Origin: Chara braunii
Taxonomy: Eukaryota > Plantae > Charophyceae
DNA: 57,831 bases
NCBI GenBank assembly: GCA_003427395.1
Contig: BFEA01000016.1
Span: 4,898,128 to 4,955,958, forward strand
Reading direction: 5' to 3'
Position numbers and translations under genes: made by a program. This document shows, piece after piece, positions 1,282 to 46,079 of this stretch (position 1 is its first letter; each line of letters opens with the position of its first letter). The notes under the pieces were generated by a model that saw nothing but the letters and a program-made list of their open reading frames with translations, ran no database searches and was not told the origin of the DNA.

Positions 1282-1337
1282 AGATTGTTTCGTCGGAGTT
1301 GCACCGACTCATTAGGAGGCTGAACCCTCGACAATCT
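1282..1337 (-). ncRNA. Type III hammerhead copy with a core mutation
   Basis: Minus strand reads AGAUUGU-C-GAGG GUUCAG CCUC-CUAAUGA-GUCGG UGCAACU CCGAC-GAA-ACAAUCU. All three stems form; core G5 is changed to A. Confidence 0.75.
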
Positions 1338-28834: not shown

Positions 28835-29394
28835 GGGTACCCCAGGCTAGTCCATCTATTGATGGGGCGCTGCACCAGCCGGAAAACGGGTCCAGCGTCC
28901 CATTGAATGCATCAATTGGGGTGATAGTTTATGAATGAACGAGGATATGATGATGAACCACCTGTGCCTCTTCTGAAGTCCAGTTTGTCGTTTTTTTTTG
29001 TTTTTTTTTTTCCCTTTTCTAAGTCGAGTTTGTTGTTTTTTATTTTTTTTATTTGAAGGTGGAGGAATCAGCCCTAGCGTCGCGGCAAGGAAGAGGTACA
29101 GGGGAGGCATGGATGGGGCGCGCAGATCCTAGAGACCGCTGAAGTGCACAGGATAATCCGAGGATTGTTTTTTTTGTGGTAATAATATTGAGGAGGAGGA
29201 GGAGGAGGAGGAGGACGGGGCTCCAACAGAGTGAGAAATTGTAGGGAAAGTGGGAGAGAGGAGCGGAGGGGAGCGGAGGGGAGGGGAGGGGAGGGGAGGG
29301 TAGAGAGGGGGGGAAGGTTTGTGAGGGAAGAGCGCGGAGGGGCGGGAAAGTTTTTGGATACGGGGCTCCGATAGAGTGAGAAATTCCAATTCTA

Positions 29395-29571
29395 TCCCTC
29401 CGCGCTCTTCCCTCCCAAACCACCCCTCCGCCCGCGCTCTTCCCTCCCAAACCATCCCTCCCCCCGCGCTCTTCCCTCCTCGCAAACCACCCCTCCCTCC
29501 GCGCTCTTCCCTCCCAAACCACCCCTACCCCCGCGCTCTTCCCTCCCAAACCACCCCTACCCCCGCGCTCT
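29395..29571. repeat. ~30 bp GC-rich minisatellite directly upstream of the BBR ORF
   Basis: CCGCGCTCTTCCCTCCCAAACCACCCCT about six times, plus one inverted copy at ~29315-29340. Confidence 0.9.
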
Positions 29572-29588: not shown

Positions 29589-30317
29589 ATGAATTGCTGT
29601 GGAGAGTGGAAAGAGGGGAAAGGGAAGGACCAGGGCGATCGGAGAGGACACGTGGCTGATTGGGGGGGAGGTTTTGGGATGGTGTCGGAGGATAATACTA
29701 GTAATGTGGGGATAAGAAGAGTGGGTGAGGTGGGAGGGATGGATGATCCACGTGTCATAGCGAAGAAGCTGCAGGCGGGTCCCGATCTTGCGCCAGGTGT
29801 GGCGGTGGTAGCAGGTCCGGATCGCGACGGCGCGCGGGGGGCCGCTGGATGTCAGGGGCTTCTGGCAACGGACACGTCATCAGCGCTACCTCAGATCTGT
29901 AACGACGGTCTCCGCGTTGATGACAATCATGATGGCGGCTATCCTGATGAGAATGAGGATGACAGTGGGGGGGGAGCCTTCCTGAAGGCGGCGGCGGCGC
30001 AATGCGCAAGCGGGGGAGACGCTGACATGGCAAGAAGTGACGAGTCTGAAGGGACGGCGGGAATGGAAAAAGGGGAAGAGATGGACAAGGAGAATAGGGA
30101 AGTGGAGAAGATCAGCATCCCCCCCTCGGAGGAGATGGCCAGACCCCCGATGTCATCGACGGTCTCGATATCCCCCCTTGCGGAAACCCCCGCGGGCGCG
30201 AACGTAGCGGACGGCGGCTTTCGGGGATTCGATCTCGCGCGACCCGTACGGCAGTCATTCTCTCAGGCGAGCGGAGTGGACGCGGATCTTCTCTTAGCGC
30301 GTGTGCTGCAGGAGCAG
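29589..30317 (+). CDS. BBR: BIG BROTHER-related RING-H2 E3 ubiquitin ligase, exon 1 (start codon uncertain: 29589, 29679 or 29739)
   Basis: ORF ends ...SFSQASGVDADLLLARVLQEQ, then donor CAG|GTGAGC at 30317/30318, phase 0. It joins ERAY in exon 2 to give the QEQERAY motif of plant BBR proteins. Confidence 0.8.
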
Positions 30318-30395
30318 GTGAGCGCCCAATCGGGGGTTCGTTTTTTATGTGACAATACAGTATGTGTGTATATATATATGTATGTATGTAATATA

Positions 30396-30443
30396 CAGCC
30401 TCCTGATGAGTCGGTCGGTGAAACTCCGACGAGACAGTTTGTC
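30396..30443 (+). ncRNA. 5'-truncated, degenerate copy of the type III hammerhead
   Basis: CAGCCUC-CUGAUGA-GUCGG...CCGAC-GAGA-CAGUUUGU. Lacks the 5' strands of stems III and I, and GAAA is changed to GAGA. Confidence 0.7.
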
Positions 30444-30955
30444 ACAGCGCGTTGTTTGGTGTCCTCTTCTCCCTTTCTCCCTCTCTGCTTACGGTTTTCC
30501 GGGCAGCTCTGGTTGACTACATATATATGCGCTCTGATATTTTTGTGACAATATATATACCACGATACCACGACTTCGCTAGCACCCTGCTACGGTTTTC
30601 TCCGGTCAGCGGCAGTAGTCGGGGCCGTCACTACGCGGCCATGCTGTGCCTCTACTGCCAGCTGCGTGTCTGGAGTGTATATTTTGGCTGTGACAGACCT
30701 TCCTTCGTTTCGTGGGTGTTTTGCTGGCTTGTGATGGGGTGTGAACCGACCGACAGTCTGTAGAGTTTTCCTTCTGGTGGGGGTGAGTGATAGTCTGCTT
30801 TGATTTTCGTCACAGGTACCTGACCTTGAGGGCAGTGGTTGGTGGTCCCCACCACCTCAGAGGTGTATCAGTTGTCGGGCAGTCGTTGATGCTTAACCAC
30901 AGCCGGGGTTAAGGTGGATTATCACTTACAGTGTAATCAGTTATTAGGGGATTCT

Positions 30956-31019
30956 GCAGACTGTCGAGGGTTCAGCCTCCTGACGAGTCAGTTGGTGAAA
31001 CTCCGACGAAACAGTCTGC
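30956..31019 (+). ncRNA. Type III hammerhead ribozyme, intact core
   Basis: Stem III GCAGACUGU/ACAGUCUGC (9 bp). GUC cleavage triplet, cut after 30965. Stem I GAGG/CCUC, core CUGACGA (30980-30986), stem II GUC/GAC, then GAAA (31008-31011). Confidence 0.85.
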
Positions 31020-31416
31020 CATAGCCCCTCGTTTTGTTGTCCTCTTCTCCTTCTCCCTCCCTCTCTGCCTACGGTTTACCGGGCAGATCTGTTTGACGAT
31101 ATGTGACAAATTGTTTCTGTCGGAGATGGAGAATATATGACGATATATATATACATGTATTTATATATTTTATATAATACATAATTGTATGTGACGATAG
31201 ATAAACAAAATTATTTTTATGTAACATTAGCTATAACATGGATGGATCGGCATGGCGAGTCGGCGAGTCCTCTGCAGAGCGATTATAAATGCATTTTTTT
31301 TTGGCGTATATTTGTTATATATTTGGGCGTCGCATATTTTCCTTTCATTTTGGAATTGTTCTTTACGCAAGTGTCGTCTCCTTGCGTTTCTCTTTTTTTT
31401 TTTTTTGTCTTAAAAA

Positions 31417-31743
31417 CAGATTAGTACCGCGGTTGATTGTTGCAGACGTGGCCTCTAATCGAGTGGCAAGAACTGAATATTTTTCTTGATTGTTGCAGAC
31501 GTGGCCTCTAATGGAGTCGCAAGAACTGAATATTTTTCTTTTGTCTTTCAAACATACCAGTACTTTTTCGACATGTCGCACGTGTAGACCGACGCCATTC
31601 CTTGTGCGCTAATGGAGCCGTGCCCCAGCAAACTGTATGCCGTGCGCTTGCCCTTTTTTTTTTTTTTTTTTTTTTTTAATAAATCAGTTCTTGCCACCCC
31701 TCGATTAGAGGCCACGTTTGCAGCAATCAACCTTTGTAATCTG
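31417..31743. repeat. Foldback element with ~60 bp inverted termini
   Basis: GGTTGATTGTTGCAGACGTGGCCTCTAATCGAG...CTCGATTAGAGGCCACGTTTGCAGCAATCAACC; the left arm is tandemly duplicated. Confidence 0.7.
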
Positions 31744-32764
31744 ATCTTTTTTCTTTTCTTTTTCTTTTTCTTTGTTACCATCAGTAAGTATCCTTTTACA
31801 AAAAAAAAAAGAAAAACAAAACATAGAGGAGAGGAGCGAGGAGAGGAGAGGGGAGAGGAGAGGAGAGGAGTGGCCCGGAATGCCGTTAGTGGCCGTCGAT
31901 CACCGTTTAATGCCCCGTTTCTTTTCTTCCGTTTTCAAAGCAAGAATCGTTTGTGTCAAGGTTCTGTCCCATAGATTATATATAGGTACGTATTGAGGAA
32001 GTGCCGTTAGCTGCCGTTGATCTATGGGACAGAAGTGCCGTTAACGGCCGTTGATCTATGGGACAGAAGTGCCGTTAGCGGCCGTTGATCACCGTTTAAT
32101 GACCCTTTTGCTCTTCGTGCACGATACGAGTGAGGAGGCGGTGGTAATGTCGGTGCGCTTTCGGAGGCTTCAGAGGATCCACGTGTCCGCTTTTCGCTTG
32201 CCGACCAATGCTCTCTGTTGGCGTTTATATGTATTCGCGATCCCTATTGGTGGGCGAGACAGCGGCTGATTGAGCGGCCACTGCAGCGTGTTTTTTTTTT
32301 TTTTTTGAAGCTATACTCTTCTCTCAATTTCACCTCACACTACCTACCTACCACTACTACTAATTGGAGGCAGGTTGCCTAGGAGCGCTGTCTCATTGGC
32401 CGCCCACACGGACTACAGCCTTTAGGGCGAGATCCCACTGGCAAAGAGGATTGTAGCAAGTGTCTGAATGTGGACGTGTTTGTCTACAGGTGCAAAAATT
32501 TGTGATCGATCTACTTTCTGCATCTCTGTGTGGAACACGTCCAGATTCAGACTCTTAGCTACTGATCCGACAGTACTTCAAACGTAAGAGAACCTAAAAG
32601 AAACAGAAAAGTCGGAGCCGGACCGTGAGGCTCGTGAAACAAAAACGGGACCCCACAGTACCGCTGAAGAAGGAGGTATGACGACAGCACCGCCGCTTTT
32701 GTGTGCCCGCCCGTGGTTCCTGCGAATTCCAAGAAGTCGAAGAGGTCCACTGGGGGGCATCAAA

Positions 32765-33214
32765 GGGCCTCGTTCCACACCACTCCACTTCAATTTCAAG
32801 TGTGGCACTTGAGCTGCGTCACAGGGTAATCGTCATTAAAAAACACTTGAGCCTGGCACGGTTCGACGGTACACTCCACTCCACACTCGAAACAGGAGCG
32901 GGAAAGTGGCAGAGGCTGTTGGCGCGAGGGAAGGGGGGATGTAAAACAAAAAAAAGAAAAAACCGGGGGAACGTGCAGCGCCTACAACCGCCTCCTGGCT
33001 CTTGAAGTGCGGCTCAAGTGTGCCCGGAGAGGTGACTTGAAAAAATCACCTATTCGCCTGGGCGGCACTTGAGCCGCACTTTACGTTTTTGGTGGGCGCC
33101 GAGAGAGTGGGGAAGCCTAATCGCGATTAGGGAAGGTGAAACTCAAGTGCAGTGCAGTGTGGAACGAGGAATTTCTCAAGTATTTCTAAAGTGGAGTGGT
33201 GTGGAACGAGGCCC
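32765..33214. mobile_element. 450 bp Tourist-like MITE
   Basis: 26 bp perfect TIR GGGCCTCGTTCCACACCACTCCACTT with AAA TSD. Ends are related to the 120 bp family and to 36093-36236. Confidence 0.8.
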
Positions 33215-33698
33215 AAAGACATGGGCCCGGTGTGGCTTTTTGAAGGTTGTGCGGCCGGTACCGGGTGTGTGAACGGTAGGAAGTGCTGTTGGACCTGGAC
33301 ATCACAAAAAAAAGAAAGAAAAAAGAAAACGTTCTCTATCTTTTGCGTTGCAGAGACGGTGTGCGGCTCTTTTCCAAAAAGGTCCATTTTCTTGCGGATT
33401 CCATTCCGCGATGCGTGCCACGATACCCCAAACCCAAAATCCCTGTGACGGTGCCGGTGTCACCTGCGACCGTGGAAACAAGTCGCAGTTTGGGTGGGCA
33501 CGTCGTAGTTTGGGTGTATCAGCCCTGTGGGGATTTTGTCAGAATCCAAAAGTAAAATAAGGAAGGAAAAAACAAAGAAACGAATCTCAAAGAAGGGAAA
33601 AAAAAAGGAACGTGAATTTGGCACTGAAATTAGGCGCTGATCCGACAATATGTGAAAAGAGAAAAAACAAGAAAGCCCCTTGGAAAAAGATGAACACG

Positions 33699-33825
33699 GG
33701 TAGTGCGGGGCGGAAAAGCAAACTGGGACCCCACACAGGTGGGTAGTGCGGGGCAGAAAAGCAAACTGGGACCCCACACAGATGGGTAGTGCGGGGCGGA
33801 AAAGCAAACTGGGACCCACACAGGT
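33699..33825. repeat. ~42 bp tandem repeat x3
   Basis: Unit GGGTAGTGCGGGGCGGAAAAGCAAACTGGGACCCCACACAG. Confidence 0.9.
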
Positions 33826-34185
33826 GGGTTCCGCAGGTCCCAAAGTACCATGCCGGATTTTTTTGGGCTTCGGAGATGGACGTTCCTGTGGTCCGCCATA
33901 TGGCCTGGTCGTACAGTTCTCTGCTCCACGGACGGACATTGAAAAGGGCGACTCATGTTTGAGGCAGCTTTCTCGGTAGGGGTAGGGGCTCGACATTTCC
34001 ATTTTGTGTAGCGCCGTTGGGCCGTTCGTCACAGCCGACGTGCCGTGTACACATGAACGCGTACACATGAACCGAAAAGGTACCCCTAACAAAGCGCGAC
34101 GCCTGTGATTTCGGAAAGTGGTGGGATCCGCATTTCTCAATGAAATTGGCTAATGTACGCACTGTCGGATCGGATCAGAAGCTTA

Positions 34186-34307
34186 GGGCCCCGCTCCACT
34201 ACTCTCGACATGCACAAAAGACAAAACTCATAACGGTGTATCTTTCGATGTTCTAGCGGAAGACTCACTCTCGTTTTGCACATTTCGAGAGTAGTGGAGT
34301 GAGACCC
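34186..34307. mobile_element. ~120 bp PIF/Harbinger (Tourist-like) MITE
   Basis: TIRs GGGCCCCGCTCCACTACTCTCGA / TCGAGAGTAGTGGAGTGAGACCC, with TTA TSD. Confidence 0.85.
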
Positions 34308-35832
34308 TTAGTTAGATACATTTGTCTGTGTGCAAGTGTGAGAGTACGCCCTTAACGAGGGCTGTTCAGTAGATCACGGGATATGCCCTGCCTCGCTGGC
34401 AGGGGAATCTAAGAAAAATGGAAAAAAAACAAAAGCAGAAAAAAACGACATCCAGAATCTAACTGCAAGTGGGACCATGCTCCTGAAGTTAAACCGAAGG
34501 TAGTCAGTACTGAAGGGCTCGAACAAAGAAAAGCCTGTGTGGAGGGATTCCTGTGTCCCCTTTTTTTTTTTTTTTTTTTTTTTTGTCTCTTCTCATTACC
34601 ACAAGTGAAACTTGAGTGGTAATAAAATGAGCAGAGGTTTCTTGTATAAAAAAAAAAGAAGAATCATTCCCGCCGCACCATACATTCGACATCCTGATAG
34701 TGATCCTGTGCAATCATTTTTTTTTTTTCCTGTGCAGTTCCCCCCCCCCCCGGTGCAATCGTTTCTGCTGTCCGTTCAGCTCACCGACGAACATCCATCA
34801 GACAGGGCAGTCACTTCTGCTGGGGCCTCAGCCCACATGCACCGTGTAGTGCCTGAAAACTACACGGAGTGACAGCGGAGAGCGGGAAATGTACATCCGC
34901 AATATTGTCTGTGCCATGGTGCCACGCCATGTGTCAAGGTGGTCCCATCATTGTAAAAATCGTGCAGCAAGTGAGGGTGCGGTAGATCTTCGCAGGAGGC
35001 CGTATAGAGTGCTGCCTTTGATCTCCGCAGGCCAAAGAAAGGGCCGGCCCATGGAAAAACAAAAATCACCACACTCGGCCCAGAGGCATTTCCTGAGCAA
35101 TGATTCGAACCGCAAGTAGGCGAGAATCAGACTGTAAGTCTCTGGAAAAAAAAAAACAAAAAAAAACATGAGCTTTTCTGCAACGGCGGATTTGAACTCT
35201 CGCCTTTGTGATCCCTCTTCGCTTTCGGCCTCCCTGCACTACTCTTCACATGCAGAGAAGACAAAACAAGGCAGTGTATCTGTTCATGTTCCAGCGGAAG
35301 AGTCAGTATCGTTTTGCACATTCGGAGACTGAGAGATCCCACACGCCTCACTACAGTTACTGAGGTTCATACTCGACATACCAGAGGTAGGGGAGAAAAT
35401 CAGTAGTGTTCTTCAGCCTCAGTACGAGGCGATCTTGTCTGCACTACGGAGACTGACAGATTCACGGATCTGCGGTCTGGACCCACCACCGCCCCCATGT
35501 CCTATTTCGTGCCGTTTTCATAACTTTTCAGTCCATCGGACCAGACCCCGCCGTGTAGTTAGCCACCCTGCTTTTCAGAAGGTGGCTAACTACACGACCA
35601 ACTCACAAACGCTGCCTCCCCTCCTCGCACAAAACGAATGGGAAAATGACATGTATCAGTGGAAGAGGCGCACCATTTTTAAAACGCGCATCTTCGCCAT
35701 ATGCCGTCCGATCTGTGGCCTCTGGATGGCTATGGCCTGTCACACCCTGCGCACAAACTACACTACACGCTGCATGTGGGCCGAGGCCCCTGGAAAAGGA
35801 GGACTCAGTGAGTGAGGGGATGTTGCTACGAC

Positions 35833-36034
35833 TACCGTCTTTCCCCGAACATAACGCACCCTGATAATGAATGCACACAACCTATATTTCCGGTCAGGTG
35901 CAGCCAAAATGAGGACAATAGTTTGCCTTCCTCTGAACATAACGCACCTTGATAATGAATGTACACAACCTATGTTTTCTGGTCAGGTACAGCCAAAATG
36001 AGGGTGCGTTGTTGTGTTTGGGGGGAAGACGGTA
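35833..36034. mobile_element. Tc1/mariner (pogo/Tc2-like) MITE with an internal duplication
   Basis: TA-CCGTCTTTCCCCGAACATAACGCACCCT...AGGGTGCGTT...GGGGAAGACGG-TA. Confidence 0.7.
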
Positions 36035-36367
36035 GGACGAACTACCCCAGCAAGCTGCTTGTTGTTTTGCAAGATGGATATTGCTCACCGAGGGGCTTCG
36101 CTCCACTAAGCAACACTCTCCATGCATTTGGACGCTTTTTGGTGCCGATACCTTCCAAATGTTGGACTCGTACAAATGCACGCGGTCCAGATAACGTCCA
36201 AATGCACGTACAGTGTTGTGTAGTGCAGCGAGGCCCAAGGACTTTTGGGTCTTTTTTCCTGTTTTTGATATTGCGGGTCTTTTTTCCTTTTCCTGATCCG
36301 ATGCGGCGATTATCCCTGCAACGTCATGTAACTAATCGAAACAAAATAAATACGGAAGGGAGTCTGA

Positions 36368-36653
36368 GGGCATACTTGCACTATAGGACCTTTTTACTTA
36401 TTTCTGGATGCAATTGCAGCCGTAACTATGGTCAGATAGATTCAGGAGAGTGGTAGTGTGAGTATGCCCCGAGTGTGTCGGATAAGCAAGCACAGACAGA
36501 CAGACAGACTATTTAAGCAACACACACATTCAGAGCGTGCTCGCCCTAGCACTTTTGTAAATGTATCTGACCGCATTTACGGCCGGACTTGCGTGCATGT
36601 GGCAGCAATTCCGTCCAGAAATAAGGAAAAGGTGCTAGTGTGAGTGTATGCCC
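36368..36653. mobile_element. Two copies of a second Tourist-like MITE family (36368-36469 and 36533-36653)
   Basis: TIR GGGCATACTCGCACTA-like / TAGTGTGAGTATGCCC-like. TCA TSD on the second copy. Confidence 0.65.
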
Positions 36654-38171
36654 TCATTCGCATTGCCCCCTGCTTTGGGCCCTTGGGTACTTGTTATGTC
36701 TGTGTGTCTGGCAAAGTGCAGGCTGATCCTGTATCAGGGGGAGAGGGAAGAGAGAAGGAGAAAGGGAAGGGGAGGGAGAAGAGAGTTTAGAGAGATGGCT
36801 TTACCCTTGCAGCCCTAGTCGCCTGCTCAAGGGGGGGACTGCTGCAACACGCATCCTCCTCCAGATCCTGGCTCTTCTTCAGGCTTCCCTTGCTGATCGG
36901 GAGGCTTTCTAGCAGCACCCAGTCACGCAGCAGGGGGATCCCTAGAAGAGCGAGGTGGGGAGCGGAGGCTGTCCCTAGCAGTCTCACATGCCCATTATCT
37001 ATATCTCAACATCTTCCCTTTACTAGTATGGTCCCGAATACTCTATTTCTTATTTCCGCCGGTGGGCGTTTGAAGAGCATCTAATTTCATGTACAGAACC
37101 TTATTCATGTCTCTCTGTCTTGCCCCTCCCTCCTTACCAAAGCCTTCTATTTTATATATGCAACCTACTACTCTTATCTCTCTACCCTCGTCTCTCTGCT
37201 TTTTTCAAGAGACTAACAGGCCTTCTGGCTATTCTACCTTGTATTTACACCTTGTTTCCCTCCATGTTCATCCATTGTATTTACACCTAGTTTCCCTCCA
37301 TGTTCATCCATATCCCCTTCTTACTGCCTTTCTTTCCCTTCTTCCTTTTATCTACTACGATTTCTTCATTTCCTATTCCAAAGTTCAAATATATTCAACT
37401 TTAGCTTTTTTTTTTTTTTTTGGTCCCCCAGTTTTTTAAAGGATTTTGTCCCTCCCTGCTTCCCCCATTTTCCTATCCGGATATCTACCCCCCTTACCTA
37501 CGGAACTGTTATGGTACACACAAGACTACTCGTCCTCCTATCCTTCCTTCGTAGCTATAGTACACCTCGGTTGTTATCCATGGAACGGTGATCTCCTGCT
37601 GGTCTCCTAGATGCTTTCGGATTCTGGTTCAGGACAGGGTCCATGGTGCAGCAAGACGGGGCCGAATCCCATCTGGTCCGTCTGAGGATCTCGCTTCACC
37701 AGCTGTGGGTAGGGGATCCATCTTTCCCGGAAGCCTTCCTCCACCGGCCCCCCTGTGCGTCTACTCCGAGTAACGTCCGCCGGGAGGGCCATTCTAGTGT
37801 TCGCCAGGGCCCTTTCCTGATATACCTGCAGTGATGGGAATGCTCCCTGTCTGCATCGTTCATTCCACAGGGTCCACAAGGCCCACAAAACCGCTGCCCG
37901 TGGAATTTCTGTTGCTATTAGCCCCTCAATCTTCGATTTGTTGACTTTCATTAGAATCCCTAGGAGGATTACTGCATCATCTTCCTCTGAGAGGTCCAGC
38001 GGTGTCTTGTCTGTGACTTCTTGCACCCACCACTCCCAGAACGTCCGAAGTATTGGGCATCGTACAAAAAGGTGAGGAATAGTCTCAACTTGTCTGCAAC
38101 CTGCCACACATTGTTGGTCCTTGTGCCAGTTCTTTGTTGCTATCCATTGCGTTGTGGGGATGGCCAGATGG

Positions 38172-38567
38172 CAGTGTTGCACACCCCGACCGTCGGCGAC
38201 CCGTGACTGGTTGGCTGCCGCCCCGTTGACTGGTCGGCTGGTCGGCACCTACCGGTCGGGGGTCGTCGGCACCCCGCCAAAATTTTTTTTTTTTTTTTTG
38301 GGTCCAGAACCCCTAATAACCCCATGAACACCCCCATACCCCCCCGAAACACCCACAAACCGCCCCCCAACACCCTCATACCCCCCCCAATACCCCCTAT
38401 ACCCCCTGCCTCTTATACACATCTAGATGTGTATAAGAGACAGTTCCAACTCAGATCTGAAAAAAAATTAGTGGATGGTTGTTTTCTGACTGGTTGGCAG
38501 ACCGCCGACTGGTCGGCCCTACTGGTCGGCTGCAATATGGTCGGCGGTTGGCAGGGATGCAACCATG
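38172..38567. mobile_element. hAT-type MITE inside LINE ORF2
   Basis: TIRs CAGTGTTGCA / TGCAACCATG. 8 bp TSD CCAGATGG at 38164-38171 and 38568-38575. GGTCGG subterminal repeats. Confidence 0.9.
38406..38443. other. Nextera mate-pair junction adapter (assembly artefact)
   Basis: Same 38-mer with one mismatch. Confidence 0.95.
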
Positions 38568-41462
38568 CCAGATGGTATATTTGCCGTAGCAGACCAGCCT
38601 GCTTCTGGTCAGGCAGGGAAGCCAGAATAGCACACTGTTCATTCCATCTCCTCTGCGTCCATCTGTTGAAGTACAAACCCGGGATCCAGCCCCTCTTTGC
38701 CCACCGATCCCTCAATCCCCTGCAGATGTATACTTGCTCCAGCAGCGAATTATAAATATTCTTTGTGGTCAGTTCTTGGAGCTTCTCCGTTTTCCTCTGC
38801 ATCCCCTGAACTGCCCATTCCCTCTCTGCCGGGTCCCATATGAGATCCCGCTTTCTACTCGCCACCCGAAATGCCAGGTATTGTCCTTCTCCCTTATATC
38901 TCCCTTCTCGTACTGCCACTGTTTCCACAGCGGTCCTTGATAACTTCTTCAGGGAGCGCCCCCCTTGCGTGCCCCCCTCTTGCAGGGGTTCACCTAAACC
39001 TTCGTATCCCGATGTGACCTGCCACTCCGATGCCTCTAGCCGTCCTGCCAAGACCCGTTCCACCCTATACACCCTCTCCGGTCATGTGCTTCATCTAGTC
39101 CTTACCCATTTCCCAGGTGTTATTTCGTCTCTCCTTGGCATCTCGGTCCACCCAGGGGGGATGGCCTCCCGCAGCTCTGCCACCCTTCGCCGTCGCCTCA
39201 TTCTCCCATGCAGCATTACCTCCATTTCATCATCGGGGCACCAGTCCTTCCGGTCATAAGTGCCCCACCTTATAGATACCCTGTTCCGCGCACTTCCATC
39301 CGTAGGCGCCCCGCGGGTTCTGCTTTGTTAACGACTCCCCGGTTGCATCGCAGATGAATCTATTGCTAAAGACTGCATCTGCTGATTTCGGCCGGCGGCA
39401 CCTCATCTGCGTCTTTTTCCACAAAGCCACTTTCGTGGTCCACACCGTGTCCCTGTGAATGTCCTATTGCTGCAGTGCTGATCAGGCACAGATCCAGCAC
39501 CTCCCTAGCCGCCTGGAGTGTGTATGCCAAATGGGTCCGAGTTATTTCTTGCCAAGTTCCTCCCACCGTGCCAAGAAGATACCATATCAGGTGCCGTAGC
39601 TGCAGGGCAATGATTTGCAGCCACGGGTAAGAAATCCCCAGTCCTCCAAACCGCCTTGGCTGGGTCAATTTGTTCTACGCGACTCTGCAAATGGAGTCTT
39701 CGGCAACAGCGCTGTTAGACCAGAGGTGCGCATGAATAGCCCTCTTGATATATCGAAAGGTCCTTTTGCCCGGCATATGCACAGCACCTGCATACCACAG
39801 CGCTGCCAGTACTGAATTCTTGATCACCGAAACCTTTACCGAAAACTCCCATGCTCCCTCTCGCACTCCATGCTGTCAGTCTTGCCACCGATGTCGTTGC
39901 TCGAATCTTATCTGCTCAACCCCTCCATAGGCCGGCGTTAGGTTAGCCCCCAGGAAAACTGTTCTTTTTCCCTCCACCGCTGTCGGGTTGTCCCATCCCT
40001 CTGGCGGCTCAACCTCCGGTGGGAGGATGGCCTTAGATGTGAGCCAGTTCACCCTTGCTCCCAAATACTTACAGAACACAGCGAGATCTTCTTTGAGGAT
40101 TCCCAGTCGTTGCGGGGATTGCTGCTCCAGAGTCTTCCGCAAATGCTGTGGACTGCAATTCCATCCCCGGCCCTGCCTTCAGACTGTTCAGCCGGTCGCC
40201 CTTAGTATGTCATGCATTGACTCGATATAACTGACATATAAGGCTGGGGATAGCGGGCACCCCCGCCTAACCGATCTGGTGATTCTCAATTTGTCTGATC
40301 GAACTCCGGTCACCTGCATCACTGTTGTGGCCCCCCCCCAGCAGACTCCTGACCCACCTGCAAAAGATTCCCCCTATTCCCCAGCGCACCATCCCCTGCA
40401 GTAAGAATTCCCAGCGAACCCGATCATAGGCCTTCTCCAGGTCTATAGACACAAAGGCCTGCCCTGTGCATTCATCTCCTTCCAAAATCTGCTCCGCCAA
40501 TAGCACATTGGAGAGGATCTGGCGCCCAGCTACGAAGCCTGTCAGAGTGCAATTAATGATGTGTGGCACCACCTGCTTCAGCCGAGTGGCCAGCACCTTA
40601 GCGAGGATCTTGTATAGCGCGTTCAGGATAGATATCGGATGCCAGTTGCGCACGTCCTCTTTCACCGCCTTCTTATAAAGCAGGACTATCTATGCATCTG
40701 CGAAACCCTGCGGGAAGGAGCCATGCCTCAGTGCCTCGTTGTATGCTGTTGTCAGCAAGGTCACAAAAAAACAGTGGAAATCCTTATACATCTCCACTGG
40801 CATCCAGTCCAGTCCGCGCGCTTTGAGGCGGGGGACCTCTGCGATTGCTGTCTCCATCTTTTCTGCTCTGAGATCATCGTCCAATCCGCACGTACTTTCT
40901 AAGTCCAGAGGATTCTGGACATGCTTCCATACTTCTTGCTCCGGTGCACTGGCCATCTCCACCGGTGTCCAATCCTCTTCTTCCGTTAAATAGTTGCCAG
41001 TAGAAATCTGTAACATACTTCAAGATGCCTCGTGTGGTGCGCTGCTTTTCCTGATTCTCGTCGAATGGATGGTTCATTGCTATCATCAGAGGTGCCACCT
41101 TACGCTTACCTATCGTAGCAAAGAATCTATGCGACATACGCTCCCTCACCAGGATCCACGACTCATTGGTACGCCTCCCTCATTTGACTGCTTCCTCCCT
41201 CTGCCATTCCCTCCAACTTCAAGCCACCTCCAGTCTCTCCACCCACCATTCATCTTCCATTTACTCCCCATCAGGGCCTTTATTAAACTCCTCTAGCCTG
41301 CTAGAGTACTCCTCCCGTCCTTTGGTGAGCCAGATAATTGCACCGCAAGTTCCGCAACTGTTTTACCAAGTTCCTTCGCAGGTCTTGGGTTGCCGCCACC
41401 ACATGATCCAACAGATTGTTCTGTAGGCATTCTTTCGCCCAGTCTTCGCAAAACTGGGCCAC

Positions 41463-41654
41463 CATAGGTCGAAACCATACTTGCGGCGCACCAGTGTGCA
41501 GCACGGGGCGGGGCAGTGCGCATTGCGCCGTGCGCTGGAATTCCAGCGCGCACACTGTGCGCTGTACGCAGTGCGCAGTGCACAGTGCGCACGCTGTGGA
41601 AGCTGCGCCAGGTGCGCAAAAAAAAAGTAAAAAAAACACAACATTTATTTGTGC

Positions 41655-41748
<94 letters not shown>

Positions 41749-42688
41749 TCCCTTTTCGTCAATTTAGGGTCCCCTGCAGGTAGCTCAAATGACTCCAACG
41801 ATGCACTTAGACATTGTGGAGGCATTGAGTACCGCTGCTTCAGCAAGCAGGGTGGCCGCGTCACAATGAGAGAGTCGGGAGCAGACCACCAGTATATTCT
41901 GTGGCGGTGAGTTCAGGTCTGTAGCTCGGGAGTTATGGGTCAGCAATTCAGCTAGACCCTGTTTGTGTCTCCATGTGACTCTCAGGGCCTAGCTCCACCA
42001 CTCACTGGTACTCACCGAGTGTAATGAATCTTCTGCTAAAATATGGAACCATACACCGTCTATGGTATGTCTTTTGTGGATGTGGTGAGTAGTGGCCAGA
42101 GGCTCCTTGGGCCACTGTACGTATTCAGAAGAAGACAAAAAGGAAAAAACGAGAGAGCTACAGGCATCTTCACGGTCACTGTACGTATTCAGAAGAAGAC
42201 AAAAAGAAAAAACGAGAGAGCTACGGGCATCTTCATCCTAACCCATCACTGCCGACATGCAGACCTGAATGCCAAACTTCAGCAATATATTGGTGGTTGG
42301 CTGGACTTACCAAACATTTCGTGTGCCCTCTGCCATGCAGTGTGAACATGGCAGTACTGGGCAATTATACCCTTCTTGCAAATTTGTCCACCTCTGCGTG
42401 GGATTTGCAGAAGGAAAGGGGAAGTCCAGTTATCATACCTCACCCGAAAAGGAAAACCTAGAGGTTCAATGAGCCTTATTTTCATAATCAGCAATTTTGA
42501 AATTTGTGGCGGAGCAGCCTGCAGAATTCGGAATTCGGCAACGCTTGCTCAAAATTTTTTTTTTGGCCAAGTGGCGCGGACAATTTCCGAACTCGCGAGG
42601 CGAGTTGAACATTTTGCACGTGGTGCGGTGCGCTGCGCATGCACAAATTTGCGCACCGAGGTGCGCCACAACTATGGTCGAAACTCTG
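41463..42688. mobile_element. ~1.2 kb TIR element interrupting LINE ORF2
   Basis: Imperfect ~30 bp TIRs sharing ACCATAnTTGnGGCGCACC, with TGCGCA-rich subtermini. CAC flanks both sides. LINE-like coding sequence resumes on both sides. Confidence 0.6.
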
Positions 42689-43182
42689 CACTTTTGAACA
42701 CGCTGGTATTGCTTTTGGTGGGTGGCCCATCTCTAGCCAACCCGTTGGGAAGCTCGCCAGTACTGCTGAATGGTCCGAAGTGGCCATAGGCTTGATCTGC
42801 ACTCGTTCTAGTACTTCATTTAGGCCTGCCGAAGCCCATATCATGTCTATTCTACTCCTCCTGGTCACTGTGTTTCCCCAGAAGGTGTAGACGTTTTCTT
42901 GCTGAGACAATGTTCGATATGAGTCTGTGCAGCCCAGCCAGTTATTCCGTTAGCGAGAGTGAGCGAGTGGGCCTCCATCTGCCTTGGGTGGGCAGCAAGA
43001 CTTGGATGGATCGGCGATGGAGTTGAGATCACCTGCTATAAGAAATTTTATCAACCTCCGGCACCAAGTCTGCAGGCTTTCCCACATCCTGCGTCGCGTT
43101 CCGGCTTCCGGTGGGCCATACACTGTCACCACTCCCCAAATTTCCTCCTCCCCTGCAGTATCACCCATGCCCACCTACCCCT

Positions 43183-43456
43183 TGAATCATAATACCAAAA
43201 CTTATCAAAAATCATTGTGCATAGCTTTCATTTTGAATTGAATGTCATGCATGATATGTACCAATTACCCACCCGTTCGGGTGGGGTTTCAATCTTTCTT
43301 GTTTTATAGTACGTGTGATAAATTGAGAAGCGGCTTGTTTCATTTCATGCGTTGACAACATCTAAAAAAACAACAAACAAAATGAAATTGTATATAATTG
43401 GCATTTTAGCCAAAATACTTGGAATAATAATACCACTTTTACTAGGAGTTGCTTTC
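43183..43456 (+). pseudogene. nad1: NUMT: nad1 5' end plus AT-rich upstream sequence, inserted in the LINE endonuclease
   Basis: ATG at 43382 starts MKLYIIGILAKILGIIIPLLLGVAF. LINE EN sequence resumes on both sides. Confidence 0.88.
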
Positions 43457-45703
43457 CATAACGTCCCCCCTAAAAATGGTGGAATACCAGGATGCACACC
43501 CCTCCTTTTGCACCCTGCACCGGTGCCCATATCTGGTGGCCTTTCCACTGTAATGCCAGTCCTTCCGTCTTGAGCTCATTCAGCCATATCCGTCTCCTGA
43601 AGACAGACAATATCAATCTGCTCTGCTGCCACCTGCTTCGCTAGTTCCCTTCGCTTGGGCAAGAGTGACCTTGCTCCTATTCCCCACAGGTTCCATGTCA
43701 TTATGTTCAACCGATTGCATTTCCTACCCGGCCCCATACCCCTTCTCCTATAACCTCCTTTCTGTTTCTCCCAGCTCCCCTCACGGTCCCTCAACCTATC
43801 TATCATTTTGAAACATCACCTCACCTAGGCTTCCCTGTTTTGATGTTTGGGGGGGGGGAGTCCTTCTCCATGCGACACCCTACAGGATAACATAGTTCGT
43901 GCTTTGCTCCCCCCTTTCCCATATCCCTATTCCATTCTGAAACTGCTCGTTTCCAACATGATCCTTCTGCGGAAGGCGCGCATTGACGCTGTTAAGAATG
44001 GCCAAGGATGTCGTGTACACCACATGGTAATCTTGTGGGATTGCTGCCGGCCCAAAGGCTTCTTCAAATGGAATCCACTGCAGGCCTCCCCGAAGTCTCG
44101 GATTGCCCGGTCTTTTGGATACGAGTTCGACAAAGTACACGATCACTGCATATTCCTTCCCTTTGACCGTACTGTGCATGAATCTAGAAGCAGAAATAGG
44201 GGGCAGGGACCGCACTTCGAACTTTTGTCCCACCCAGTCCGTCACCTGCTTCAACACTTGCCACTCTTGTGGCAACTTGCTTGCACTAAAGGTCAGTACT
44301 TCGGTTGCCCCCTCCATCAGTATCTTATCCCCGCCAGCCGTCCGCCAAAGGGTTATGGGGCACACATAACACCCTTCTGCCTGCAAAATACTCTTCAAAC
44401 CCATCCCTGCCCGCTCTTGCTTTGCTAATTCTACTAGCTGGGCCAGCGGCTCCTGCTGCTGCCCCTCCTCCCTTGCCTCCGCCCGATGTGTCTGTGTTCT
44501 GGTCCTACTCGCTTGCGTGGACTTGCTTTGCGAGGCTTCTTCCTCAGGCACCGGCCAATGTCGGTCCTGCTTCGAGTGCTGCCCTCCCTCACCTTCCTCC
44601 TCTCCCCCACCTTCTTCTGTCGATTCCTGGGTTGACTGCTCCCCCTGCACCTCCTCAGTCCCTGAGGTTTCCAAAGTTTCCAAAGTCTCTCCCCATGGCT
44701 CCCTGTATCTGCCGCCCCCGATACTGCCTCCCTTTCCGGAGTGCATATATTCACGCTTATTCCCTCCACCGGAAGGTCGTAACTCACTTCCCTGAGCAGA
44801 GCCTAGGCCGAGGGGGATGGCGTAACATCCCTACGCCGTTTCCCTCTCAACCAATACCGTGGTCCTTGTCCCCTTCCCCCAATCAGGGATCGCTCCCTTT
44901 CTCGTATATAAGCCGATTGCTCCTGCAGGCTCGACTTCGGTTGGTAAACATCTCCCTTCCATGTGGACCCAGCCTCTGTTGACGAAAACGTCGGGGCCGG
45001 GAAACACTCCGCCGATGACGAGCTTTTGGGGGGACCAGCAGATACCGTCTTCGTTCTACGCTTATATCCAGTCGACATCCCCTCTCTTTTATCTTCTTCT
45101 GCTGTTATGGGTATTTCATAGACCGGCCTACCCTGTACCTGGGGAGTTCCAGATTCGCAGGAGCTTCCCTGTCTTCCCTGCATACCTTCATCTGCCCCCT
45201 CCTTCTCCTCCGTCCCCCCTGCCTCTTGTACCTCTTGTCGCTCTTGTTGTTCCCTCCTCAGCCCGGTGCCTATTTCCCCCATCCTCTGTTCCTCCTCTCC
45301 TTTGTCTCCCTCATCTTGTCCTTCTCCCTCCTTTACCTTTCCCTGGTCCTGCCTTTGTCCCCCCCTTCCCATTGCACTTTCCCTTTTCACTTCCTCTTCC
45401 TTCGTTCCCCTCTCCCGCTTCCCAATCCCTACTTCACTCCTTTCCTCCTGATGATTCCTCCCTTGTACTTCCCCCGCCCCCTGTTCTATCTCGGCATTGC
45501 CTGTTTATACTGCACCCCAGGTCCTTGGCTTTGCCAACTTCTTCACCCTCTCTCCCTCCCTTTCAGACCCTCCTCTCATATACCGCCCCTGCCAACTGCT
45601 CTCCTGATCCTACTGCCCCTCTTTGAAGCCCTGCTTGCTAGTGTATTTCTGCCTGAGTCTTTTCTTTTTTTTTGTTTTCTTCTTTTCCTTGTGGTTGTTT
45701 CAG

Positions 45704-46079
45704 GAACGGGCTTACCTTCTGCTAACTGGCTTTGGAGCTCATGGGTATGGTAGCGAGAGTGAAGAACTTTTGGGTGGTGTCTTTGACGACGGAAATCTTC
45801 TCCATCTTGGCAGAGCGGAGAATGATGCCAGAGTGGAGGGAGATGGCGATGGGCCCGCTGCTGGCGAAGACGATGGTGGGACAGGGTCGCAGGGGAGACC
45901 TGGGCAAGGCGCTCACTCTGAGGGGAATGCACAGGAACCATTGGATCAACGAACAAGAGAAAGCATGGAGATCGACGGTACAAGATACGACGATGATGAA
46001 TCGCTTGCACGAGCTTTGCAAGAGGAGGAGGACAGGGAGATGACGGCAAGGCTGATGGCATTAGCATGCTCGCTGCCTG
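45704..46079 (+). CDS. BBR: BBR exon 2
   Basis: Polypyrimidine tract and CAG acceptor at 45701-45703. Encodes ERAYLLL...DDDESLARALQEEEDREMTARLMAL (UIM-like BBR motif). Donor G|GTGAGA, phase 1. Confidence 0.9.

Follow-up and report, generated by a model that had tools for sequence, protein, structure and literature searches.

The window, meaning the whole stretch of 57,831 nt that was analysed, comes from the charophyte Chara braunii (contig BFEA01000016.1 of assembly GCA_003427395.1) and contains a RING-type E3 ligase gene that spans 25 kb in the NCBI annotation and has RING-finger Pfam hits. Its first exon ends in a donor that reads CAG/GTGAGC, and exon 2 begins at 45704. In the long intron between them, in sense orientation and 78 nt past the donor, lies a small non-coding element made up of a short and a long copy, with a complete type III hammerhead ribozyme in the long one (Table 1). 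Contigs from RNA-type runs of several studies account for 9-19% of the sampled words of 30250-31250, a share that exceeds the 68 nt which are exonic there; the figure applies to the stretch as a whole.

The same intron holds a LINE remnant (40270-42949, minus strand), which includes RVT_1 (40270-40689), zf-RVT and an endonuclease-like ORF; the closest database proteins to its reverse transcriptase reach at most 47% identity, and none is from Chara. Just 3' of the hammerhead element there is a 53-nt tandem duplication (31433-31538), and inverted repeats that are 78% complementary (31412-31466 and 31697-31751) lie between long T-runs; 31412-31751 may be a small hairpin element or MITE. Just 5' of the start codon of the RING gene, a GGGAGG/CCCTCC-rich imperfect palindrome (29250-29481) yields spurious miRNA-family matches below threshold (MIR1858, with 56 bits where the gathering score is 137). 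At about 16.9-18.1 kb and again at about 23.3-23.7 kb the assembly has gaps, written as N, whose flanks are (GA)n, (CA)n and (TA)n microsatellites.

Table 1. Features of the hammerhead element, its host gene and a second hammerhead element in the window
Feature	Positions	Strand	Basis
Hammerhead of second non-coding element	1282-1337	-	RF00008, 40.4 bits
Exon 1 of RING-type E3 ligase gene (P0014, 488 aa)	29589-30317	+	tblastn; 100% identity to residues 1-243
Intron 1, ~15.4 kb	30318-45703	+	tblastn exon mapping; GT...AG ends
Isolated tail motif, T-run then ATGTGACAATA	30339-30357	+	repeat family D7
(TG/TA)n microsatellite, directly 5' of short copy	30358-30395	.	sequence
Short 5'-truncated copy, with 3' part of hammerhead (30396-30446, A14 to G)	30396-30553	+	alignment to 30973-31112
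Parts of short copy: polypyrimidine tract, small hairpin, then tail motif	30462-30486, 30494-30515	+	alignment, pyrimidine runs
(TA)4 spacer between copies	30554-30561	.	sequence, end of homology
Long copy, ~550 nt, 53% G+C, non-coding	30562-31112	+	sequence, alignment, fold
Left arm of predicted rod ("anti-hammerhead" arm)	30686-30807	+	minimum-energy fold, arm alignment
Right arm of predicted rod, with whole hammerhead inside	30905-31026	+	minimum-energy fold, arm alignment
Complete type III hammerhead ribozyme	30956-31019	+	RF00008, 39 bits; cut predicted between 30965 and 30966
Polypyrimidine tract, then small 3' hairpin	31040-31066, 31064-31087	+	fold, pyrimidine runs
Tail motif closing long copy	31098-31112	+	alignment

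As the definition of a type III hammerhead we took the core C3 U4 G5 A6 N7 G8 A9, G12 A13 A14 and A15.1-U16.1, an NUH triplet, and a topology in which helix III is open-ended and helices I and II are closed by loops. Direct reading of the complete motif gives a GUC triplet and the core CUGACGA...GAAA, which agree with this definition and place the cut after C30965; helix III, of 9 bp, is open-ended, as type III topology requires. A cmscan search matched RF00008 to 30958-31017 on the plus strand with 39.0 bits (E 1.1e-6 when the 1.1-kb stretch is searched, 5.9e-5 across the whole window). The match was obtained with E-value thresholds and lies below the curated cut-off; because 39 bits falls short of the gathering score of 48.5, a default Rfam search of the window at gathering thresholds returns no match. 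The complete hammerhead reported in the earlier note is thus borne out by the RF00008 match and by the core. Across four related copies, 96.6% of the cells in the hammerhead helices are paired, against 37-58% in slid controls; one compensatory pair occurs in helix III (C-G to U-A), which in four sequences is by itself without statistical significance.

Helix I has 4 bp under a 6-nt loop, and helix II is built of 3+2 bp, with a 4-nt insertion relative to the related copies and an A·C mismatch or bulge. Folded alone, the 64-nt motif has as its minimum-energy structure a hairpin in which the core CUGA pairs with UCAG in helix II; when the hammerhead is imposed as a constraint, the best fold lies 7 kcal/mol above this alternative and is predicted to make up about 3e-6 of the ensemble. 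Nearest-neighbour energies take no account of tertiary contacts or of folding during transcription, so that a gap of 7 kcal/mol is no proof of inactivity; it does make the activity of this copy doubtful. Two further possibilities were dropped: a ribozyme of opposite polarity, in the manner of viroids, since the minus strand opposite the plus hammerhead has no Rfam hammerhead match up to E 10, and a tRNA or Pol III head, since no RNA-family match adjoins the ribozyme.

The terminal direct repeats claimed for the element are real: 30396-30522 and 30973-31102 share about 127 nt at 83% identity, at a spacing of 577-580 nt. Alignment of the copies also confirms the claim that the 5' edge of the element corresponds to a point 7 nt downstream of the cut, as the homology begins at 30396, the counterpart of 30973. 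Starting where it does, the upstream copy (30396-30446) has lost the cleavage site together with the 5' strands of helices III and I; in addition it reads GAGAC where GAAAC is required, an A14 to G change at an essential core position, and its sequence thus predicts a dead ribozyme. The description of the locus as carrying tandem hammerheads does not hold, as there is one cleavage site and not two; neither does the proposed release of a 577-nt RNA, because no RNA of unit length can be excised from a transcript of a locus with a single site, and the "577-nt unit" itself is the distance between the two copies found here. If a copy of 551 nt were truncated at random, the break would fall within 7 nt of the cut with a chance of about 0.03; as a single observation, the edge of the short copy is suggestive of, and would fit, a self-cleaved RNA template, for which a circle is not required.

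Several features recur along the region. The tail motif TTTTTATGTGACAATA occurs at least four times, at 30342, 30538, 31098 and 31214, with unequal spacing. As part of a shared 3' motif, a T-run followed by (A)TGTGACAATA, it ends the homology of the two copies (30538-30553 and 31098-31112); it stands alone at 30342-30357, 5' of the microsatellite, and recurs in diverged form at 31214-31229. The heptamer TGTGACA is found four times on the plus strand in the 760 nt around the element and three times in the remaining 57 kb. A polypyrimidine tract of 25-27 nt is present in both repeat copies, and TA-rich sequence follows 31112 (including 31147-31191). A small hairpin motif, CUGC..CGG-UUUU-CCG..GCAG, is present three times in direct orientation (30494-30515, 30588-30612 and 31067-31088), twice near the 3' ends of the two copies and a third time within the long copy's 5' domain; the reverse transcriptase may recognise it.

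We read the region from its sequence as a head-to-tail series of segments with a common 3' end and lengths of about 20, 158, 550 and 20 nt, each adjoining a TA-rich repeat; the long copy may be full length or itself 5'-truncated. More than one round of copying around a circle, in a single event, should space the tail motifs equally, and the observed spacing is unequal. This, together with the (TA)n between the copies, fits stacked or partially tandem 5'-truncated insertions, so that insertions in the manner of Penelope-like elements explain the layout no less well than a circle copied into a 1.2-mer does, and the circular intermediate of about 577 nt that had been postulated is not needed.

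The element has no recognisable coding capacity, in agreement with the earlier note. A Pfam scan of all stop-to-stop ORFs of at least 110 aa in the window found no domain within the ORFs of the element, and a 113-aa ORF inside it has no relative among 5.8 billion proteins. Neither a reverse transcriptase nor a GIY-YIG endonuclease ORF of Penelope type is present in the element or anywhere in the window, where the RVT_1 domain of the LINE is the sole reverse transcriptase; if it belongs with Penelope-like elements at all, it can do so only as a non-autonomous derivative. The reported lack of a primer-binding site, a polypurine tract and TG...CA ends is likewise confirmed: the element contains no tRNA-Met PBS-like site with up to two mismatches and no run of nine or more purines on its plus strand, and it shows neither TG...CA ends nor a 4-bp target duplication.

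Set against the known classes of hammerhead elements, the locus has a repeat of about 127-158 nt whose upstream copy lacks a cleavage site, not a pair of LTRs with two complete hammerheads; it comprises 1.2 units with one complete ribozyme, not a tandem array of monomers each with its own; and its hammerhead has type III topology, not type I. What it does share with them is a non-coding body without LTR, PBS or PPT whose RNA is highly self-paired (fold z -5.0), and a partial tandem (pLTR) in which the upstream copy is 5'-truncated, the repeat contains a hammerhead and the target is a microsatellite. The earlier designation of a non-LTR retrozyme-like element in an alga accordingly stands as far as "non-coding", "non-LTR" and "hammerhead-bearing" go, and fails in that one site allows no excision of a unit.

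The sense RNA of the long copy (folded as 30554-31112) is markedly more stable than expected from its composition, at -222.4 kcal/mol compared with -190.1 +/- 6.5 for dinucleotide shuffles (z -5.0), while the antisense RNA reaches z -0.95. The dominant predicted fold is an imperfect hairpin of about 120 bp in which the two arms listed in Table 1 pair with each other and the entire hammerhead is buried; 30751-30770 pairs with 30947-30966, across the cut site. When the reverse complement of the left arm is aligned to the right arm, 77 columns are Watson-Crick pairs, 23 are G·U and 2 are A·C. If the arms were simply an inverted repeat decaying as DNA, G·U and A·C would be expected equally often. 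The excess of G·U has p 1e-5 against such a 1:1 null and p 0.025 against the arms' own G+U-rich composition. Its simplest reading suggests that the family evolved under selection on the structure of the sense RNA; a strand-biased mutation process could account for part of it. The 17% divergence of the repeat copies was considered as a contradiction of so well-kept a rod and dropped as too weak (about 6 A·C expected, 2 seen). A weak hammerhead fold combined with the rod would make efficient cleavage of the host pre-mRNA unlikely, and this would explain how the intron can tolerate a ribozyme on its sense strand, 650 nt from its start.

A second hammerhead-bearing element lies in the same window, on the minus strand at 985-1975. 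It is about 990 nt long, non-coding and flanked by (CA)n; its ribozyme core is broken (CUAAUGA, G5 to A), a protein search with its ORF was blank, and it has no significant fold (z -0.6 on both strands), by which we dropped the idea of a rod in this second family. The two elements have in common a ribozyme module of about 77 nt and a weak similarity in the pyrimidine-rich stretch that follows it. A search of metagenomes with a 27-nt ribozyme pattern gave no match, as did a scan of viral contigs; a 20-nt pattern gave five metagenomic loci, of which one has a hammerhead, and this one belongs to the second family. The locus in question (BFBZ01011546.1, 1-1534, from a metagenome collection) is 77-84% identical to the second element, shares with it the 5' end after (CA)n, is non-coding, and retains an unbroken core in which the site is GUA. 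Its first 86 nt are identical to its last 86 nt, so the contig may derive from a tandem or circular template. Two or more non-coding families thus have this ribozyme module in common while differing in their microsatellite targets, and single genomic copies are often decayed.

How the element arose can be considered in several ways. A true non-LTR retrozyme would release an RNA of about 577 nt from tandem masters, and this RNA, once circularised, would be reverse-transcribed for more than one round to leave a 1.2-mer. Animal non-LTR retrozymes operate in this way (PMC7229834), and the edge 7 nt from the cut site, the absence of LTR, PBS and PPT, and a rod-like, self-paired sense RNA with a strand-specific excess of G·U, comparable to viroid-like and retrozyme RNAs, would all be in keeping with it. 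Yet the locus offers a single cleavage site and no tandem array, its repeat copies differ by 17%, and the extra tail motifs at 30342 and 31214, unequally spaced, together with the (TA)n spacer, fit separate events; we therefore regard a true retrozyme as unlikely, while giving it some weight. The classical LTR retrozyme of plants has still less in its favour: a type III hammerhead, a non-coding body of less than 1 kb and 53% G+C agree with it, but the pair of LTRs with two complete ribozymes is missing, as are a tRNA-Met PBS, a polypurine tract in the right place, TG...CA ends and a 4-bp target duplication. These tests refute this identity, and the chance that it is nevertheless correct seems negligible.

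Two further explanations, both improbable in our judgement, leave aside the mobility of the RNA. The direct repeat could have arisen by local duplication of DNA, through slippage or unequal exchange between (TA)n tracts, from part of a single insertion and without relation to RNA cleavage. Microsatellites do flank and separate the copies, and the copies have diverged, which would make the event an old one; such a process, however, should duplicate the whole unit and not place just the last ~150 nt upstream, it gives no account of an edge that adjoins the cut site, and further isolated tail motifs are hard to obtain from it. Slightly less probable again is exaptation, in which the ribozyme or the G·U-rich hairpin would serve the host gene in the control of its pre-mRNA or as a source of small RNA. 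The sense orientation close behind the donor of intron 1 and a strong structure confined to the transcribed strand would suit such a role, and intronic hammerheads of amniotes with a role in mRNA biogenesis are cited in PMC7229834; against it, the ribozyme has weakening changes, and the LINE in the same intron suggests that the intron is simply a sink for transposons.

The best reading, in our view, is a partially tandem or stacked intronic insertion of a non-autonomous element of Penelope-like kind, which is retrozyme-like only in a broad sense. We consider it rather probable that a non-coding, non-LTR family of Chara braunii, which carries a type III hammerhead and lands in (TA)n, inserted here long ago, either once or as a small stack; membership of such a family, the full length of the element and a link to an autonomous Penelope-like element would hold by analogy with published elements. 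Penelope-like elements classically carry minimal type I hammerheads, and the type III hammerhead found here counts against the Penelope reading, as does the lack of any Penelope-type reverse transcriptase within the window. So does the choice of target: Chlamys elements target (CA)n and (C)n, and (TA)n is the target of Naiads (PMC8557442).

In the mechanism that we propose for this Penelope-like reading, master copies would be transcribed and the hammerhead would cut the RNA to give a defined 5' end. A reverse transcriptase supplied in trans, most likely by the hammerhead-bearing Chlamys Penelope-like elements of Chara braunii, would start at a nicked (TA)n by way of the UA-rich tail of the RNA, and would copy to the end of its template, giving a short copy of about 150 nt where that end is the cut site and a copy of about 550 nt where it lies farther upstream; repeated or template-jumping events would then produce a partial tandem. 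Reverse transcription that runs off a ribozyme-made 5' end predicts a copy of about 150 nt, which the short copy matches, minus 7 nt. A single event and stacked events may both account for this locus. Because the upstream ribozyme is predicted to be dead, helix II of the downstream one is weakened and the rod is predicted to be much more stable than the catalytic fold, the element is probably inert here.

A bolder form of the Penelope-like reading, to which we assign a low probability, is that Chara braunii has a family of viroid-like, rod-shaped RNAs with type III hammerheads, which undergo cleavage and perhaps circularisation before Penelope-type machinery copies them back into microsatellites, with the RNA-selected rod as the on/off switch of the ribozyme. 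If this were true, viroid-like RNAs of Chara would link Penelope-like elements to the hammerhead viroids and the retrozymes of type III that occur in flowering plants. This copy is decayed and intronic and so matters mainly as one more datum; the point of most carry-over value is the strand-specific, G·U-rich rod that conceals the ribozyme, which, if it is kept in other copies, would support the view that selection acts on the element as RNA.

What we describe is not a new system, as autonomous hammerhead elements of this alga have already been published (PMC8557442). The earlier statement that no such family had been described was too strong: besides these Chlamys elements, a paper of 2017 had already pointed out tandem hammerheads of a retrozyme-like kind in algae (PMC5680766). 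Our literature search found no published description of short non-coding type III families of Chara. Among the Chlamys elements, Craig et al. (2021) distinguished two hammerhead-bearing subclades, one in Chara braunii and one shared with spike mosses, and reported very high copy numbers in Chara; for Penelope-like elements they described frequent 5' truncation, partial tandems (pLTRs) with a hammerhead, short extra tails at their ends and a bias towards microsatellites (PMC8557442).

By their published description, the Chlamys / PLE-X elements of Chara braunii resemble the present element in their host, in a canonical hammerhead within the terminal repeat or 3' region (PMC8557442), in the partial tandem with a 5'-truncated upstream copy, and in frequent 5' truncation, microsatellite insertion and extra tails; the element differs from them in having about 550 nt and no ORF (GIY-YIG, RT or gag), and in lying in (TA)n whereas the targets reported for them are (CA)n and (C)n. 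Metazoan non-LTR retrozymes, which are derivatives of Penelope-like elements (Cervera and de la Pena 2020, PMC7229834; Li et al. 2026, bioRxiv 10.64898/2026.07.22.740005) and more precisely of their pLTRs (10.64898/2026.07.22.740005), are likewise non-autonomous and non-coding, lack LTR, PBS and PPT, have highly self-paired RNA and share the likely Penelope-like link. Their hammerheads are of type I and their monomers, of 150-450 bp, form multi-copy tandem arrays; they have low G+C and are depleted in introns, whereas the present element is a type III, intronic 1.2-mer with 53% G+C and one predicted live cleavage site. With angiosperm LTR retrozymes (Cervera et al. 2016, PMC4918200) it has in common the type III hammerhead, the sub-kb non-coding unit and a G+C content above 50%; LTRs of about 350 bp, each with a complete ribozyme, the PBS and PPT, 4-bp target duplications and mobilisation by Gypsy elements are theirs only.

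Hammerhead viroids and viroid-like satellite RNAs also have the ribozyme within a long rod, paired with an opposing strand and with many G·U pairs on one polarity, and a conformational switch between ribozyme and rod is plausible from the predicted folds; what is found here differs in being a genomic DNA copy in a nuclear intron, with no ribozyme of opposite polarity. Plant retrozymes, and via them hammerhead viroids, have reportedly been proposed by De la Pena and Cervera to descend from Penelope-like elements. A streptophyte alga with short elements that mix both sets of features, the Penelope-like ones (no LTR, microsatellite targeting, partial tandems) and those of plant type (a type III ribozyme and a structured, viroid-like RNA), would be the kind of intermediate that this idea of descent predicts.
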